IMG/VR virus record: IMGVR_UViG_3300005236_000140
Coordinates: 1-5,607 of that record
Direction: 5' to 3' (one strand)
DNA length: 5,607 nt
The position numbers were made by a program, and so were the translations under genes. The notes under the pieces are model-generated. The model saw only the letters and a program-made list of their open reading frames with translations, was not told where the DNA came from and made no database searches. The stretch's first letter is position 1. Each line of letters begins with the position of its first letter. This document shows positions 1 through 5,607 of this stretch, one piece after another.

Positions 1-3000
1 TAGCTTGGCTTTTACCTGCTCTATGGAGAGGTTGATATTATCCATGGTGGAGAGCATTTCATCCCCTCTTTTTCTCCACAACTTTTCCACTTCACCCCAT
101 TTGTCAGCCTGTCTAAGGGCCTGGGCTTCCTCCATAGTTTGCCTCATCATCCGGTGAGGGATAAAAGCAGCAGTCTCGGACATGGTTTCATAGTTGGTAA
201 AGACTTCCATCAGGTCAGCTTTGGTATTGATAGGAAAGGCATCTAACTCCGAGGCTCGGAGACGGAAATTCTCAGCTACTTCATAGGGGTAATGCCTCAA
301 GTCCTCTATAGCGGTATCAGCTACCTGCTTAACAAAAGATTGGATATTATCTACGCTCCTAAGAACCTTACCTTCCTTGATTAACTGCTCGCCTAATGCC
401 TTAGCCCTAGGACTCAACAACTCTGCCTTCCTCAATATCTTAATCATTTCACCTTGCATTAGGGAGCCATCAGTCAATATGGATTTCAAAGCCAAGGCAT
501 CATCCACACTAGATAACAACCTCTTAGTCAGTTCTTGGGATAACTCCTCACTTGTCAATCCTAAAGCAGTTTTGGCTATTTTGGGTGGATTCTTACTCAA
601 TATACCTAAAGCTCTCCAAATGTCCTCACCAGCTACTTTGTAGGTATATTCAGCCAAATACTGCTGCATCTTGGTAGCCACAAAATTCCTCCTCAAAGCA
701 CCACCAGCCCAATCACTAACACCTAAGGTTAATTGCCTCCAGAATTTGGGTAACATACTCCAAGCACCTTTACGGTTAGAAGCTACTGTTTTGAAGATTC
801 CAGAAGGGTCACCACCAGGTCTTAGCTTTAAGGCTGGGTCACCTATCAAACCCTTAGTCAACATCTGATAAGCCTCATCCTTCATAAACTTTGGTATAAC
901 ACCTTCAATAAGGCTTACTCCAAGACCTTCAAAAACATTCCAAATGGGGTAGGCTATATTACCAAGATTGGCTTCGGCTAACGGCCTAACCCAGTACCTA
1001 GCTATGGCAGTTTGTAACCTGCTACGCTCCATCCTATCCACACCCCTCTGCATAGCCAACACCACACCTTCAAAGAAACTACCACTGGCTTGTGGCCCTC
1101 TCACCATGCTATTGGCTATAGCCTTTTGCCGTTTCATCATATAACCAATCATTTGCTCTACAGCACCTACTTTGGCAGCTTTACCAATCCTAATAACAGT
1201 ATCAACATCAGTGGCTTGCTTGGCTCCGAAGGCTATAATCTCCTTACCCAGTTTGGCTATGTTATCAGGAGTCTCCTCTATCATTAAGGCTCTAGCCATC
1301 CTAACGGCATTAAAATCCTTACTACCCTTTTTCATTATAAGGTCAGAGATAATATCGTTAACCTCGGATACTAGAGGGTCATCCACTACCTTCAACAATC
1401 CAGGAGGGGCCTTGGTACTACCAGGTTCTAGTAACTGTCCGGCATGGGTCTTACTCCAAGACCAGATTTGGTTGGCATCCAAAGCCTTATGACGGGCTAG
1501 GAAACCTCCAAGCTGAGTTATAGGGTCAATGTTATCTGGAGCAGTTTGAAAAGCCTTCCTAGCTGCTAATAGGGTTTGGGCTACATCATCCATTGTAGCC
1601 TGTCCTACTCCCTTACCACCAATAATCTTGCCAGTATTAACCTCTATAGCTTGGTGGAATTTCAGGACAAAATCATCCGACTGCTTGGCTACTAGCTGGG
1701 TAAAGGTTCTAGCCATACGTCCGGACTGGAAATACTTCATGGCAGTCCATGGAAAGTCTAAGGCAGCCCACATACCTCTATTAACAGCCAATATCTTACC
1801 ACCAAACATTTCAAGTCCGGCACCTACCAAATACTTGGTTGATAATATACTTTTACCGCCAGCCATCATAGCTCTACCTGTTGCTCCAAGGGCTACACCT
1901 GGAACCTTTAGCACCAAGCCAGGTGTATAGGTAAGTGGGTCCATAAATATTTCCAAGGGCAACTTGTAATACCATTCTACATCTAAATCTTCCCAAGCAG
2001 CACCAGCAGCCTGCCAAACACTCATTCCTGAGGCTCTATACTCGTTATAGGCTGTATCGGTATTATACTTATTGATAAACTTACCCCAGAAAAACTTGGC
2101 TGTCCAACCTACTATAGGATTAGCCCAATTCTTTATATAGGGTTGCATCAGGTTAGCCATCTGTTGCATAGGGCTTTGAACCATGAAAAAGGCTTTCTCA
2201 AAGAAAGTTTGGTCTGGAGGCTCCCACTCTCTAACTCCTGCCAATACCTCTTGCCTTGTTTTGTCCCATTCCTTATAGGATTCAGAGATAATACTAACTA
2301 TGGTATCATAATCCAAAACCTCTGATAGTACTTCTGGAGTTACTCCACCTGGCCCAGATAAACCTATAATACTGGCATAATGCATTAACTCCTCTTGAGT
2401 CATATCCTTGGGTAACTCAACCATGCCCGTAGCTGGCAGGGCTTTGAGTAACTCATCCACAGTTATACTCTGGAGACTAAGTTGGGGAGGTTTAGCTTTC
2501 TCCTCCAGGAAGGCTCTAACCACTGCTTCTTCCTCAGGGGGCACCTTCAACCAGTCTGGAACCTCCACCTTTTTAGCCTGTTGGGCAGATATAGCCCCTT
2601 CCATATCAGCTAGTAACTCTGGAGGTAATGTCCCAACTGGTATTTTAGCCATCCTCAGGTAATCATCTACCGAGGTAATGGCTTTGGCAGGGTCATCCTT
2701 GAAATATTGGAGGATATCCATATGGTCGTAAAACTGGGACATTAGGTTAGCATTGGCTGCATTGTTAACCGATTGCTCCATTTCAGATTTGGCCATTTTA
2801 GTCCCTGTTTCAGTATATTGTAATTGGGTTATGGGTACAAACTTGCCAGTAATAGGGTCTTTTATGCCACCACTGGATAATAGACGGCCAAAGACCTGGT
2901 ATGCTATAGTTTGCCAGATATTTTTACCAGCAGGAATTTCACTGATAGGGGTAAATCCAGGAACTTCTACCTTAGGTTCTTGAGTAGAAAACCTCTCAAC

Positions 3001-3093
3001 TTGTTTTGCCCACCATTCCCTACTTCTCTGGTATTCAGAAGGGTCAGGTTTTAGTAATTCCTCAAACACTTTTTCTTTCTCTGGTTCTGGCAT
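1..3093 (-). CDS. Giant phage protein (>=1031 aa, 3' end outside window); putative internal virion / DNA-ejection protein
   Basis: Not in the ORF track because its stop lies outside the window. Manual translation from ATG 3093 gives MPEPEKEKVFEELLKPDPSEYQRSREWWAKQ...DNINLSIEQVKAKL with no stop codon over 1031 codons. SD AAGGAG lies 7 nt upstream. It has a Pro/Glu-rich N-terminus, an EIFMDPLTYTPG motif (aa 381-392) followed by a Gly/Ala-rich hydrophobic stretch, a helical-looking remainder and no Cys. The CDS is near certain; the function is inferred from composition and its position after the portal. Confidence 0.85.
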   Translation of the reverse strand, partial: MPEPEKEKVFEELLKPDPSEYQRSREWWAKQVERFSTQEPKVEVPGFTPISEIPAGKNIWQTIAYQVFGRLLSSGGIKDPITGKFVPITQLQYTETGTKMAKSEMEQSVNNAANANLMSQFYDHMDILQYFKDDPAKAITSVDDYLRMAKIPVGTLPPELLADMEGAISAQQAKKVEVPDWLKVPPEEEAVVRAFLEEKAKPPQLSLQSITVDELLKALPATGMVELPKDMTQEELMHYASIIGLSGPGGVTPEVLSEVLDYDTIVSIISESYKEWDKTRQEVLAGVREWEPPDQTFFEKAFFMVQSPMQQMANLMQPYIKNWANPIVGWTAKFFWGKFINKYNTDTAYNEYRASGMSVWQAAGAAWEDLDVEWYYKLPLEIFMDPLTYTPGLVLKVPGVALGATGRAMMAGGKSILSTKYLVGAGLEMFGGKILAVNRGMWAALDFPWTAMKYFQSGRMARTFTQLVAKQSDDFVLKFHQAIEVNTGKIIGGKGVGQATMDDVAQTLLAARKAFQTAPDNIDPITQLGGFLARHKALDANQIWSWSKTHAGQLLEPGSTKAPPGLLKVVDDPLVSEVNDIISDLIMKKGSKDFNAVRMARALMIEETPDNIAKLGKEIIAFGAKQATDVDTVIRIGKAAKVGAVEQMIGYMMKRQKAIANSMVRGPQASGSFFEGVVLAMQRGVDRMERSRLQTAIARYWVRPLAEANLGNIAYPIWNVFEGLGVSLIEGVIPKFMKDEAYQMLTKGLIGDPALKLRPGGDPSGIFKTVASNRKGAWSMLPKFWRQLTLGVSDWAGGALRRNFVATKMQQYLAEYTYKVAGEDIWRALGILSKNPPKIAKTALGLTSEELSQELTKRLLSSVDDALALKSILTDGSLMQGEMIKILRKAELLSPRAKALGEQLIKEGKVLRSVDNIQSFVKQVADTAIEDLRHYPYEVAENFRLRASELDAFPINTKADLMEVFTNYETMSETAAFIPHRMMRQTMEEAQALRQADKWGEVEKLWRKRGDEMLSTMDNINLSIEQVKAKL

Positions 3094-3100
3094 ACCTCAA

Positions 3101-3106
3101 CTCCTT
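3101..3106 (-). promoter_or_regulatory. Shine-Dalgarno site (AAGGAG) of the giant ORF
   Basis: The minus strand reads TAAGGAG-TTGAGGT-ATG; the SD overlaps the TAA stop of the upstream small ORF. Confidence 0.8.
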
Positions 3107-3200
3107 ACCATAGGGTTAACCAAGGATAACCCCAAACAATATCATAGGCTAAAATACCAATTATAAGCCAATACAATATAATACCAATCCATAATCTCAA
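3105..3200 (-). CDS. Small single-pass membrane protein, 31 aa (MRLWIGIILYWLIIGILAYDIVWGYPWLTLW), or frameshift extension of the portal
   Basis: TTG start at 3200 with GGAG 9 nt upstream. It fills the portal/giant-ORF gap almost exactly, and its TAA overlaps the SD of the next gene, as at the other junctions. Residues ~3-24 are hydrophobic. Probably absent from the ORF track because of its short length. Confidence 0.6.
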   Translation of the reverse strand: MRLWIGIILYWLIIGILAYDIVWGYPWLTLW

Positions 3201-3201
3201 A

Positions 3202-4884
3202 TTAAAGTTCTCCAAGTCCTCTGGTAGGTTCAACAACCTCTCTTGGCATAACCTCTCTAAGAGGTTGTCGTGGTTGTTCTTGCCTCTGTTGAGGTTGCTG
3301 GACTAATCCTAACTCAGCCTCTACACTGGCTGCCAACTTCTCATATAGCTGGGCTGATGGAATATCTCCAGCCTCCCTCAATCTCTTGCTATGCTCTCTA
3401 TAGGCTATGATGGCATCTACCATAACAGCCTTAGGATGCATCATAGCTTCTTCCTCTCTAACCTGGGCTTGAGTTCTTAGGGCATCTTGAATCTCTGGGA
3501 ACATCCTATCCATTATCCAGCGTTGGGGAAGTTTGAAGGCAGGATTCAACATCCTGGCTATAGTAGCTCTCTGTACCATGTAGCCTGGTATCTGTATCTC
3601 ACTGGTTACTTTGAACCTAAATTCCTCCGGCACATTATCAGGCATTTCAAACTTATGGGGTTTGAGGTTATTTACTTTAATCATGTTATACCAGAAGTTA
3701 TCCACATCAGTTAAGCAGCCTTCTAAACCCTCTTGATAGGGAGTAAGCTGTTGCAGGGCACTAGAAGCAACATTAGCCATAGCCAAATAGCTTAACTGCT
3801 GTTGGAGATTACCATGCAGTACCCAGGGAAACATCCCTCTCTGAATCATGTTGGAATACTCAAACATAGCCGTTCTAAGCTCTACTGGTATGTTGGGAGG
3901 TTGGATAAAGCCTATATCATCATTGGGGCCCATCCTAAATATGGCTCCCCACTTATTCGTATTCTCCTCAGTTAGGATGGCAGTATCTCCAGTGGATTTT
4001 TCATACCACCTAGCCTGGGCAGCATTACGGCTGGATTGCTGTATAAAACTTAACATCTTGTTATAGGTTAGGGTCATTTGCTCGTTGGTAGCTACTATAG
4101 ACTCACCAAAGTGTTCCTGCCATTTCTTGCCTGTAGCTATAGCACCTTCATCCGGTAAGCCACCTACTGGAGAGGTAAAGACAGGTAGATAGGATTCTCC
4201 CGTCTTTTGTATCAGCCTGTTAATAGCTACATCCTTCTCGGGAGGTTTGACATATTCCTGTCCTAAGATAATGGCATTGGTAGCATCACCATCATCATCA
4301 AAACCCCAATAATCATAGAGGTTGGCATTGTTGGCTATTCTATTAATACTCCATCCTTGCAACTTTACTTTCCTATTAGCTTCGGCTGGTGTCATAGAAT
4401 AGATATGAGCCACTTCAATTAAACCATCAGAGCCAAAATCAGGATAAACCTCTATAGGGTTCCACACCTCAGCCCATAACTTGTCTTTGGTAACCATGGC
4501 AAATACTGAATACCAACCAGTGGCTAGCATAAGACTAATCATTTTGGACATAAACCTTTGCCTACCGCTGCGCCTATATCTCTCCTCCTCAGCTTGCCAC
4601 CTTTTGGTAATGTAACTTTCCAACTGGCTGGTGGCAGACACTTCTGCTGGTAACAATTCCTCTATTTCTATTTTGTGGCTAATAATACTGGATTGGAGGA
4701 GGAATCGGCCTAGGTTATATCCAGTCTTAGGGTCATTGGAAACAACTGACTCCATACCTTCCTGCTTTAACTCATCTTTAAGGGAAAGGATATCATACCA
4801 ATCTCGTATTTTCTTATTCCTAGTTGACCAATTAGCCTTGAGCTTACCACACTTCTGTATCAGGTCCGACGCCAATAATGCCAT
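3202..4884 (-). CDS. Phage portal (head-tail connector) protein, P22/podovirus-like
   Basis: 560-aa ORF with a strong SD (GGAGGT). Size and motif pattern resemble portals: N-terminal helix (NWSTRNKKIRDWYDIL), WNPIEVYPDFG wing-like segment, FGESIV followed by a long stem-like helix, and a helical/Gln-Pro-rich C-terminal tail. Recognised by pattern and context, not by search. Confidence 0.75.
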   Translation of the reverse strand: MALLASDLIQKCGKLKANWSTRNKKIRDWYDILSLKDELKQEGMESVVSNDPKTGYNLGRFLLQSSIISHKIEIEELLPAEVSATSQLESYITKRWQAEEERYRRSGRQRFMSKMISLMLATGWYSVFAMVTKDKLWAEVWNPIEVYPDFGSDGLIEVAHIYSMTPAEANRKVKLQGWSINRIANNANLYDYWGFDDDGDATNAIILGQEYVKPPEKDVAINRLIQKTGESYLPVFTSPVGGLPDEGAIATGKKWQEHFGESIVATNEQMTLTYNKMLSFIQQSSRNAAQARWYEKSTGDTAILTEENTNKWGAIFRMGPNDDIGFIQPPNIPVELRTAMFEYSNMIQRGMFPWVLHGNLQQQLSYLAMANVASSALQQLTPYQEGLEGCLTDVDNFWYNMIKVNNLKPHKFEMPDNVPEEFRFKVTSEIQIPGYMVQRATIARMLNPAFKLPQRWIMDRMFPEIQDALRTQAQVREEEAMMHPKAVMVDAIIAYREHSKRLREAGDIPSAQLYEKLAASVEAELGLVQQPQQRQEQPRQPLREVMPREVVEPTRGLGEL

Positions 4885-4895: not shown

Positions 4896-5084
4896 CTACT
4901 TACTTATCGGTTGGCTAGTAACAAACCTTAGGACTATGTTGATTATTGCCAGGATACTGGTAGCTAATGCAGCCTGAACCTCAACATCCAGTTCTATTCC
5001 AAATTGGCTGTTAAGGATTATAGCTACTATAGCCAAAAAGTTCACCCACAATGTCTTACTGGCGTACCAATGTTTACTTTCCAC
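4896..5084 (-). CDS. Holin-like small membrane protein (2 predicted TM helices)
   Basis: 62 aa, GTG start with SD AAGGAGGG. Two hydrophobic segments (TLWVNFLAIVAIIL; AALATSILAIINIVL) are joined by an acidic loop. The KxWYxSKTLWxN...NIxLRxxTxxPI pattern is one I recognise from small phage holin-like proteins. Confidence 0.7.
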   Translation of the reverse strand: MESKHWYASKTLWVNFLAIVAIILNSQFGIELDVEVQAALATSILAIINIVLRFVTSQPISK

Positions 5085-5096: not shown

Positions 5097-5576
5097 TTAT
5101 AATACCGCTCTATCTAGTTGGTACCCTTTTTCACCTACTTCAAATACCTCACCAGTTTGAGGTTCTACAACTACCCTCCTATCCTCTGCCCTAACAAGAT
5201 TAAAGGCATGATAGCCCATCGGAGTGTTACCTAACTGTATTGCACAATCATTTATGCCAAACTCAGAGGACATTAAACCCTTGAATAGGATTGCAAAATC
5301 ATCACAATCCATTCTTGCTTTCCTATATTTGGGGAATTTATAGACTTTCCTTATCCACTTAGTAGCCTCTTTTACTCCCCATAAAGTTGTATAGTAATAT
5401 GGCTCACCAGCATCCCATAATCCCATGGGAATGGCAATACCTAAATCCTGCATTTCCTTCTGGACTAATTGGGAATCATTCTCATAAAAGGTAATATCAG
5501 GCTTTCCTGCCTCAAATTCCTGTTCTCCAAAGGCTTTACAAATACCACAGGCTATATTCCTTATTAACTCTAACAT
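5097..5576 (-). CDS. Papain/transglutaminase-like cysteine peptidase related to the Marasmius oreades agglutinin (MOA) C-terminal domain
   Basis: Motifs DCDDFA (Cys codon 5304-5306), HAFN (His 5208-5210) and EPQ (Glu 5163-5165) match the order and spacing of the Cys-His-Glu triad of the MOA proteolytic domain. I prefer the ATG at 5576 (159 aa; TAATG overlap with an upstream stop, GGTGG 8 nt upstream) over the track's GTG at 5588. Confidence 0.75.
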   Translation of the reverse strand: MLELIRNIACGICKAFGEQEFEAGKPDITFYENDSQLVQKEMQDLGIAIPMGLWDAGEPYYYTTLWGVKEATKWIRKVYKFPKYRKARMDCDDFAILFKGLMSSEFGINDCAIQLGNTPMGYHAFNLVRAEDRRVVVEPQTGEVFEVGEKGYQLDRAVL

Positions 5577-5607
5577 TACCATTTCCACCCACTGCGACCA
5601 GCATATC
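5576..5607 (-). CDS. Probable C-terminal fragment of an upstream gene (...YAGRSGWKW*), possibly the terminase large subunit
   Basis: An open frame TAT GCT GGT CGC AGT GGG TGG AAA TGG TAA whose stop overlaps the next ATG (TAATG). Only 9 codons are visible; the terminase guess rests only on the usual terminase-portal gene order. Confidence 0.35.
   Translation of the reverse strand, partial: YAGRSGWKW

Follow-up and report, generated by a model that had tools for sequence, protein, structure and literature searches.

A giant cysteine-free helical protein of uncultured phages, a candidate chassis for enzymes ejected with phage DNA

We describe a giant gene, present in part on the IMG/VR virus record IMGVR_UViG_3300005236_000140, whose product is probably a cargo-carrying chassis, encapsidated in the phage's head and ejected with the DNA. 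The stretch analysed, referred to here as the window, is the complete record of 5,607 bases (CheckV completeness ~13%). On its minus strand it carries the N-terminal part of the gene. The full-length protein has 2,187 residues without a single cysteine and belongs to a family in which one disordered linker is a cargo slot with interchangeable enzymes. In the phage of the window the cargo enzyme is a predicted Dam-family (D12) N6-adenine DNA methyltransferase.

The giant frame is a real gene under purifying selection. The initial annotation of the window, made from its letters and a track of open reading frames (ORFs), had pointed to a minus-strand frame that the track had missed and that ran stop-free from an ATG at position 3093 to position 1. 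We confirmed this frame. An ORF listing with open ends allowed gave 1..3093 (-) as an ATG-started ORF of 1031 aa, open at the contig end, and its translation has zero stops with the standard code sufficing. It was missed because the default listing drops ORFs that run off an end. The chance of 1031 stop-free codons at the composition of the window is ~9e-30. Codon usage correlates with that of the neighbouring 560-aa gene in frame (r=0.88), as against 0.15-0.18 out of frame, and the frame is also open in two diverged relatives (78% and 73% aa identity), with a ratio of nonsynonymous to synonymous substitution rates (dN/dS) of 0.14-0.15; both codon usage and dN/dS support the gene. The good Shine-Dalgarno sequence that had been claimed was located as AAGGAG at 3106-3101, 7 nt ahead of the ATG at 3093-3091. 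Eight plus-strand ORFs lie within 1..3093, every one started by TTG and only 60-106 aa long, as expected for the antisense shadows they had been taken to be.

The suggestion that the window holds only the N-terminal part of a larger protein was also borne out. A metagenome contig from the Joint Genome Institute (L010; 6,229 b) overlaps residues 372-1031 of the giant protein with I978T as the sole mismatch in 660 aa, and 399 of 400 nt are identical in the terminal overlap. This contig carries the frame on to a stop (L010:1982-5449), giving 371 + 1,816 = 2,187 aa in total. Four independent assemblies of the window phage (5,607, 5,119, 8,226 and 6,229 b, these being the window, L002/L012, L003 and L010) all break inside the giant gene at different positions, which suggests low coverage or strain microdiversity there.

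Within the window, the gene and its parts are as follows.

1..3093, minus strand: N-terminal part of the giant gene; 1,031 codons, 47% of 2,187 aa, forming the N-half of the chassis, predicted to be all alpha-helical; continues past window position 1.
2794..3093, minus strand: poorly conserved N-terminal segment, residues 1-100; low-confidence model, with a predicted local distance difference test score (pLDDT) of ~46-55 over most of residues 40-100.
1918..2001, minus strand: conserved block W..K...E...DPLTY.G.G, residues 365-392; K377, D385 and P386 near-invariant in the alignment.
889..996, minus strand: conserved block (V)RP.AEA.L....Y...N..E........G(V).P, residues 700-735; N719, E722 and P734 near-invariant in the alignment.
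1..354, minus strand: start of the central rod, residues 914-1031; long antiparallel helices modelled as a spectrin-like three-helix bundle, the rod continuing beyond the window.

An exhaustive HMMER search placed the giant protein in a family with at least 68 cluster representatives, mostly of 1,800-2,800 aa and collinear from their N-termini, all of which come from uncultured phages. Family members are homologous end to end. The last ~600 aa are best conserved, with up to 58% identity, whilst the N-terminal 110-360 aa vary across the family and in many members are shared with few others. A word-based protein search with the giant protein found no relatives, probably because of its length window, and none were found for the methyltransferase region either. 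Neither the window protein nor the conserved regions of the family matched Pfam or PHROG; against PDB, the window protein gave only coiled-coil noise by sequence and profile, and the conserved regions had no match by sequence. Both halves of the giant protein were without a tblastn match in 50,697 deposited phage genomes, and a search of species-representative genomes with the single giant protein found no prophage or host. A helical module of ~160 aa, present in P0003, the closest full-length relative (residues 877-1041), and in seven other members, is placed differently by member (P0003 898-1060, P0011 1313-1487), pointing to module shuffling inside the central rod.

The initial annotation had recognised no catalytic motif in the visible part and allowed that enzymatic domains might lie beyond the window. 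This proved correct, the only catalytic domain being the methyltransferase at full-length residues ~1283-1515. The match to PF02086 (D12-class N6-adenine DNA methyltransferases; E value 1.3e-12, 48.4 bits against a cutoff of 22) covers profile positions 3-230 (228/253). DPFFGGG at residue 1305 (motif I) and DPPY at residue 1470 (motif IV) follow the alpha-class order, and both are in register in an alignment to M.DpnII (PDB 2DPM, E 3.5e-5). The 1,816 C-terminal residues contain no helicase or other Pfam domain besides PF02086. No other family representative carries the methyltransferase, and among phage proteins it is closest to Dam-like enzymes that stand alone, at no more than 28% identity; this cargo is therefore a recent capture. 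One relative that lacks the methyltransferase cargo has a stand-alone enzyme of the N6_N4 class (weak Pfam match) adjoining its DNA polymerase gene (L016:16213-17049, minus strand). The clade may therefore supply DNA methylation in differing ways.

The methyltransferase forms an insert of 277 aa that falls between residues 1417 and 1430 of P0003, the position of a disordered linker in this cargo-less relative. Other members fill the same slot with other modules. In P0043 it holds an ART-PolyVal ADP-ribosyltransferase domain (PF18760, E 7.8e-17, 62.8 bits against a cutoff of 31.2). In P0063 it holds a zincin module with an HExxH...E motif, which recurs in ~15 members, in the slot or nearby, below every Pfam threshold. 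The slot of L020 contains a 265-aa insert with a weak lead to the acetyltransferase family GNAT (PDB 2ATR, E 0.14), and GNAT was weakly matched in Pfam in 2 members (E 1.3e-4); no identity was found for the insert in P0034. Neither P0003 nor L018, the latter being 70% identical in the C-domain, has anything in the slot. P0004, the second-closest relative (2,816 aa), bears its zincin module at the C-terminal tip, with HEIGH at residue 2691 and sub-threshold matches to Reprolysin_4 (E 7e-4) and M90 (E 5e-3). This tip belongs to a C-terminal extension of ~950 aa (residues 1870-2816; L006:7013-9853), the first ~700 aa of which have no recognisable domain.

The absence of cysteine from all 2,187 residues has a probability of ~3e-12. 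Cysteine is avoided throughout the family: 59 full-length members, with inteins removed, average 0.7 cysteines per 1,000 aa compared with 12-13.5 in the remaining proteins that these phages encode, an ~18-fold depletion. We infer that this avoidance fits a protein that unfolds, crosses the portal and tail channel, and refolds in or beyond the oxidising periplasm.

Inteins home into essential genes, at critical sites. In the giant family, an intein of ~300 aa was found in ten members (P0014, P0015, P0023, P0037, P0040, P0047, P0052, P0059, P0063 and P0064) and none in the copy of the window phage. It interrupts the near-invariant motif that opens the C-domain, IYPYW/TYESQRWFW (slashes outside brackets mark the junctions), with the junctions IYPYW/C(M/V)PE...TGN/TYESQRW and a second insertion site two to three residues later. 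One member has a Pfam Intein_splicing match (E 1.2e-4). Since the intein sits in an invariant motif, the C-domain is likely to be indispensable. The clade is intein-rich in general. In one relative, a LAGLIDADG insert lies in TerL, and DNA polymerase A bears both an intein and a LAGLIDADG domain (L005:5356-7983; L016:13362-16235).

We also checked recognition sites in the phage DNA. GATC does not occur in the window, and in 14.2 kb of the window phage 0 copies were observed against 41.7 expected. The site is likewise absent from five relatives (L006, L008, L017, L018 and L020). TCGA, ACGT and GGCC are also depleted, and CpG has an observed/expected ratio of 0.21-0.23. Such avoidance of restriction-type sites is extreme for a phage, and the absence of GATC together with the low CpG indicates that the lineage is under strong restriction-type selection. 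The predicted methyltransferase probably has a target other than GATC on the phage's own DNA.

Structures were modelled with AlphaFold2 using family alignments for the window half of the giant protein and for the C-terminal half of P0003. The window half was modelled with a pLDDT of 73.6 as ~45 helices with essentially no strand, and the C-half of P0003 (pLDDT 82.4) was likewise all-alpha. A rod of long antiparallel helices takes up residues ~914-1031 and the next ~200 residues, whilst many short helices lie in confidently modelled globular domains (pLDDT 82-95). In the P0003 model, the linker at 1416-1428 has a pLDDT below 50, as does another at 1439-1447. Fold searches covered the two ~1,000-aa halves as wholes, and hence the ~600-aa C-domain inside the C-half. 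Foldseek on AlphaFold models and PHROGs had been suggested in the initial annotation as a route to identification; run here, they gave no informative match. Against PDB the best E values of the two models were 0.16 and 0.27, with template-modelling (TM) scores of at most 0.18. The best BFVD match (E 1.9e-3) was an uncharacterised phage protein, followed by tape measures and polyvalent proteins at TM of at most 0.1. Shape searches of the ESM Atlas reached TM of at most 0.31, and VIA-align likewise returned generic helical matches only.

Four candidate domains were considered in the course of this work and set aside. A Fic domain suggested by weak Foldseek rows had a TM of 0.14, and no Fic-type motif was noticed in the translation. 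LPD38, a lead from protein-language-model features in the Atlas (0.89), had no support from Pfam. A lytic transglycosylase reading of the 'YES' in YPYWTYESQRW fails because the window's own clade, which reads TYHTYRW there, does not keep the Glu. A head maturation protease, the occupant of this gene slot in phage Rowa, was rejected given essentially no beta structure and the lack of the zincin module in the window's clade.

The giant gene is part of a late head module. On three long contigs of relatives (41.9, 42.2 and 45.1 kb) the order is TerL, a portal-sized protein, the giant gene, a coiled-coil protein of ~190 aa and the major capsid protein, and this order is kept at ~23% identity. The capsid protein of the relatives was identified by phrog_212 (9e-50) and PF20911, and its closest cultured relatives are siphoviruses. 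In the structural modules of these relatives no tape-measure-like or further ejection-protein-like gene was found, and their larger tail proteins resemble the T7 nozzle in composition. A podovirus, as presumed in the initial annotation, is no more than a possible assignment for the window phage. For the window phage, an ENA contig encoding an identical 560-aa upstream protein (L003) extends the context to a weak TerS-like protein, a 62-aa ORF, TerL (phrog_2, E 1e-12), a 159-aa ORF, a second 62-aa ORF, the 560-aa protein and the giant gene, in that order. On the other side, a 209-aa gene (P0072) lies 3' of the giant gene on L010 and encodes a charged, scaffold-like coiled-coil. The giant gene, at ~6 kb, takes up ~15% of the coding capacity of the genome.

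The remaining features of the window lie upstream of the giant gene.

3094..3201, minus strand: spacer of 108 nt between the portal-like gene and the giant gene; AT-rich, with the AAGGAG at 3106-3101 and a sigma70-like promoter match.
3202..4884, minus strand: portal-like protein of 560 aa (P0002), immediately upstream of the giant gene.
4896..5084, minus strand: small protein of 62 aa with two hydrophobic helices (hydropathy 1.98) and weak holin PHROG matches (E 0.002-0.007).
5097..5606, minus strand: C-terminal part of a protein of ~160 aa that follows TerL (the 159-aa gene on L003), with sub-threshold lectin-type matches.

The giant gene had been placed directly downstream of the portal. 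It does adjoin P0002, but the identity of that gene as the portal is probable only, as P0002 had no Pfam, PHROG or PDB match and no tblastn match in phage genomes. It is 48% identical to the gene at the same position in a relative (L005), and protein-language-model features (Atlas) group it with SPP1_portal, P22_portal and podovirus Head-tail_con clusters with scores of 0.93-0.97. Its size, its position after TerL, these features and the same-position homologue make it a probable portal. The promoter match in the spacer, TTGGTA-16-TATAAT at 3187-3160 on the minus strand, agrees at 10/12 positions; it comes from a consensus scan only, in which 3 promoter-like sites were found against 0.7 expected. 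The spacer is near-absent in some relatives (0 nt in L005, ~10 nt in L008). The holin-like 62-aa ORF has the TerL-side gene on one flank and the portal-like gene on the other, an unusual location for a membrane protein of holin type.

The giant family was compared with phage proteins that are delivered from the virion. Polyvalent proteins, whose cargo types were catalogued by Iyer, Burroughs, Anand, de Souza and Aravind (2017; PMC5512222), are giant single polypeptides encoded among portal and terminase late genes, in which non-catalytic domains of unknown fold are combined with effector enzymes. The giant protein resembles them in both respects. It carries an effector, PF02086, within ~1,900 aa of other conserved sequence, and its gene stands in a late series of TerL, portal-like, giant, scaffold-like and major capsid protein genes. 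The cargo found across the family (DNA adenine methylase, ART-PolyVal, zincin metallopeptidase and possibly GNAT) fits the catalogued repertoire. Signature polyvalent domains are lacking in the giant protein of the window phage, and ART-PolyVal occurs in its homologue P0043. Unlike polyvalent proteins, in which 2-15 domains are strung together, one cargo sits here in one defined slot and the conserved chassis makes up ~85-100% of the protein. Our analysis would place the giant family with the polyvalent proteins in kind, on a new chassis, because it is a late giant protein with effectors from the PMC5512222 repertoire and has ART-PolyVal in a homologue.

The kinship with known large virion proteins proposed in the initial annotation held in one part and failed in another. 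The likeness to P1 DarB-style polyvalent proteins is well chosen, as the signature domain ART-PolyVal is found in one family member, but homology to T7 gp15/gp16, to N4 or crAss-like virion RNA polymerases or to DarB was not found (hhalign at most 7%, no Pfam or PHROG match). P1 DarB, a protein of ~2,000 aa, is packaged at ~45 copies and ejected along with the DNA (PMC12810830). At 2,255 aa it is similar in size to the giant protein, has a DNA adenine methyltransferase inside and is encoded by a gene that abuts the portal gene. It offers a functional model, that of a packaged, co-ejected protein guarding DNA from restriction. The two proteins have no similarity in sequence or profile (hhalign at most 0.4%, BLASTP E>1), however, and differ in that DarB has an EcoKI/TaqI-class methylase with a superfamily 2 (SF2) helicase and 9 cysteines, against a D12-class enzyme without helicase and 0 cysteines here. 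P1 is, moreover, a 94-kb myovirus, whereas genomes of the giant-protein clade are 42-45 kb.

T7 gp15 and gp16 share with the giant protein a large size, an almost wholly alpha-helical make-up and freedom from cysteine (0 in 747 and 1,318 aa); gp16 is all-alpha prior to ejection (PMC8954989). By contrast, hhalign probabilities to them are only 0.1-1.9%, and the T7 genes follow the tail genes whilst the giant gene lies between portal-like and scaffold-like genes. The T7 core is also made of three polypeptides rather than one, and no lytic transglycosylase domain was detected in the giant protein. A further precedent is phi24B gp47 (2,811 aa), which is abundant in virions by mass spectrometry, is not visible by cryo-EM and was proposed to be an ejection protein (bioRxiv 10.64898/2026.04.10.717836). 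It is comparably giant and combines LPD5, LPD1 and LPD38 with a metallopeptidase; the relative P0004 ends in a zincin module, and the Atlas features weakly place the giant protein with an LPD38-containing cluster (0.89). The giant protein itself has no Pfam LPD match and no tblastn match in deposited phage genomes, so the likeness to gp47 is architectural only.

Because of the precedents of P1 DarB and phi24B gp47, encapsidation followed by ejection is the most likely explanation of the giant protein. The chassis would consist of an N-half, a central helical rod and a C-domain of ~600 aa, made as a late head-module protein and incorporated into the procapsid beside the portal. At infection it would leave with the DNA by way of the portal and tail channel and bring its cargo into the cell. 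Once delivered, the methyltransferase might shield the genome that is entering, or hinder restriction in some other way. The giant protein would then be a functional analogue of P1 DarB and other polyvalent proteins, and the chassis may double as an ejection conduit, like T7 gp15/gp16. Also in favour of this reading are purifying selection on the gene, the conserved order of the head module, cargo of the types catalogued for virion-delivered polyvalent proteins, the avoidance of cysteine and the all-alpha halves (both as in T7 ejection proteins), the lack of another ejection-protein-like or tape-measure-like gene in the structural modules of the relatives, and the extreme restriction-type avoidance of the lineage. 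The gene, its full length, its family and synteny, the methyltransferase domain with its motifs, the cargo slot, the intein and the cysteine avoidance are established from the sequences, while encapsidation, ejection and an anti-restriction role are inferred. A bolder version, which we put forward only tentatively, is that the cysteine-free helical chassis of ~1,900 aa is by itself a previously undescribed single-chain ejection machine, equivalent to T7 gp14, gp15 and gp16 together, with the linker as a plug-in site for methyltransferase, ADP-ribosyltransferase, metallopeptidase or acetyltransferase delivered with the DNA.

Several points weigh against packaging and ejection with an anti-restriction cargo. 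Judged from the sequences, self-protection at GATC cannot be the role of the methyltransferase, because this canonical D12/Dam target is absent from the available phage DNA. The core function of the chassis is also cargo-independent, because its closest relatives carry no cargo. The chassis has no LPD, MuF or MPTase-PolyVal Pfam match, and its methylase is of the D12/Dam class without a helicase, unlike the DarB-type dyad of LPD36-methylase and SF2 helicase. Alignment of the chassis by hhalign to T7 gp14, gp15, gp16 and gp8 and to P1 DarB, DdrB, DarA, Sit and portal gave at most 7% in every case, and the modelled chassis matches no known fold in the PDB, BFVD and ESM Atlas searches.

The rival explanations carry weight in the order of an undelivered head core, a cytoplasmic late protein, an expanded MuF-like protein and a displaced tape measure. 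The first, although distinctly less likely than packaging and ejection, survives best. The giant protein would here be an internal core or assembly protein of the head that is never delivered, which nucleates or sizes the procapsid on the portal, and whose portal-tethered methyltransferase methylates progeny DNA during packaging. The gene does have the portal gene on one side and the genes for scaffold and capsid on the other, a slot for assembly factors (taken in phage Rowa by the maturation protease). An intein placed in an invariant motif speaks for an essential function, and in P1, DarA and Hdf link internal proteins with head morphogenesis (PMC12810830). Yet the ART-PolyVal, zincin and possibly GNAT cargo are best understood as effectors in a newly infected cell, family-wide cysteine avoidance like that of T7 gp15/16 is unexpected for a purely cytoplasmic or capsid-resident protein, and a separate coiled-coil candidate for the scaffold is present in P0072.

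Less probable again is a non-virion late protein, a cytoplasmic hub for anti-defence or DNA modification whose place in the late operon is incidental. The lack of homology to any known virion protein, the promoter-like site upstream of the gene and the usual occurrence of phage methyltransferases as stand-alone cytoplasmic enzymes are consistent with it. Strict head-module synteny down to ~23% identity is not, nor are the avoidance of cysteine and the devotion of ~15% of coding capacity to a helical chassis that persists without cargo, and the ART-PolyVal family was itself defined from packaged polyvalent proteins.

The classic protein that is encoded next to the portal and carries effector domains at its C-terminus is MuF. 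A very divergent, expanded minor head protein of the MuF/SPP1 gp7 type would share with the giant protein both the gene position directly following the portal and the principle of fusing effectors to a head protein, and one weak ESM Atlas row led to an SPP1 gp7/MuF cluster (TM 0.26, model residues 456-906). We regard this as improbable. A TM of 0.26 is at noise level for helical proteins, PF04233 was not found in the window protein at E<=1 and none was reported in 58 family members (thresholds 0.001-0.1), and the cargo here is internal rather than C-terminal.

That the giant protein is a displaced siphovirus tape-measure or tail-length protein is highly improbable. In favour are its all-alpha make-up and great length, the closeness of the capsid protein to cultured siphoviruses, the lack of any other gene resembling a tape measure in the structural modules of the relatives, and the presence of tape measures among weak BFVD rows (E 5e-3 to 0.3, TM at most 0.1). 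Against it, the gene is found upstream of those for scaffold and capsid instead of after tail tube and chaperone genes, the models show compact globular domains of short helices (pLDDT 82-95) and not one extended helix, hhalign to P1 Sit gave 6.9% with no Pfam or PHROG tape-measure match, the protein has enzymatic cargo, and its intein site falls in a compact conserved domain. Thus the match to a standard tape measure against which the initial annotation had cautioned was found neither by gene position nor by profile.

If packaging and ejection of the giant protein are true, the family would represent a new and widespread phage protein-delivery chassis, sequence-unrelated to MuF, DarB, LPD-type polyvalent proteins or the ejection proteins of T7 and P22. 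Its design is modular, with one carrier and one disordered-linker slot that has already been filled in nature by at least 3-4 enzymes. The occurrence of empty, methyltransferase, ADP-ribosyltransferase and zincin versions on one chassis makes it testable how large folded enzymes are encapsidated and cross the portal channel, and suggests a route to phages engineered for co-injecting chosen enzymes. The cysteine-free signature that it has in common with T7 gp15/gp16 could be a cheap means to predict ejected proteins from genomes. A probable role can also be given to a gene of ~6 kb that is now 'hypothetical' in all databases searched.

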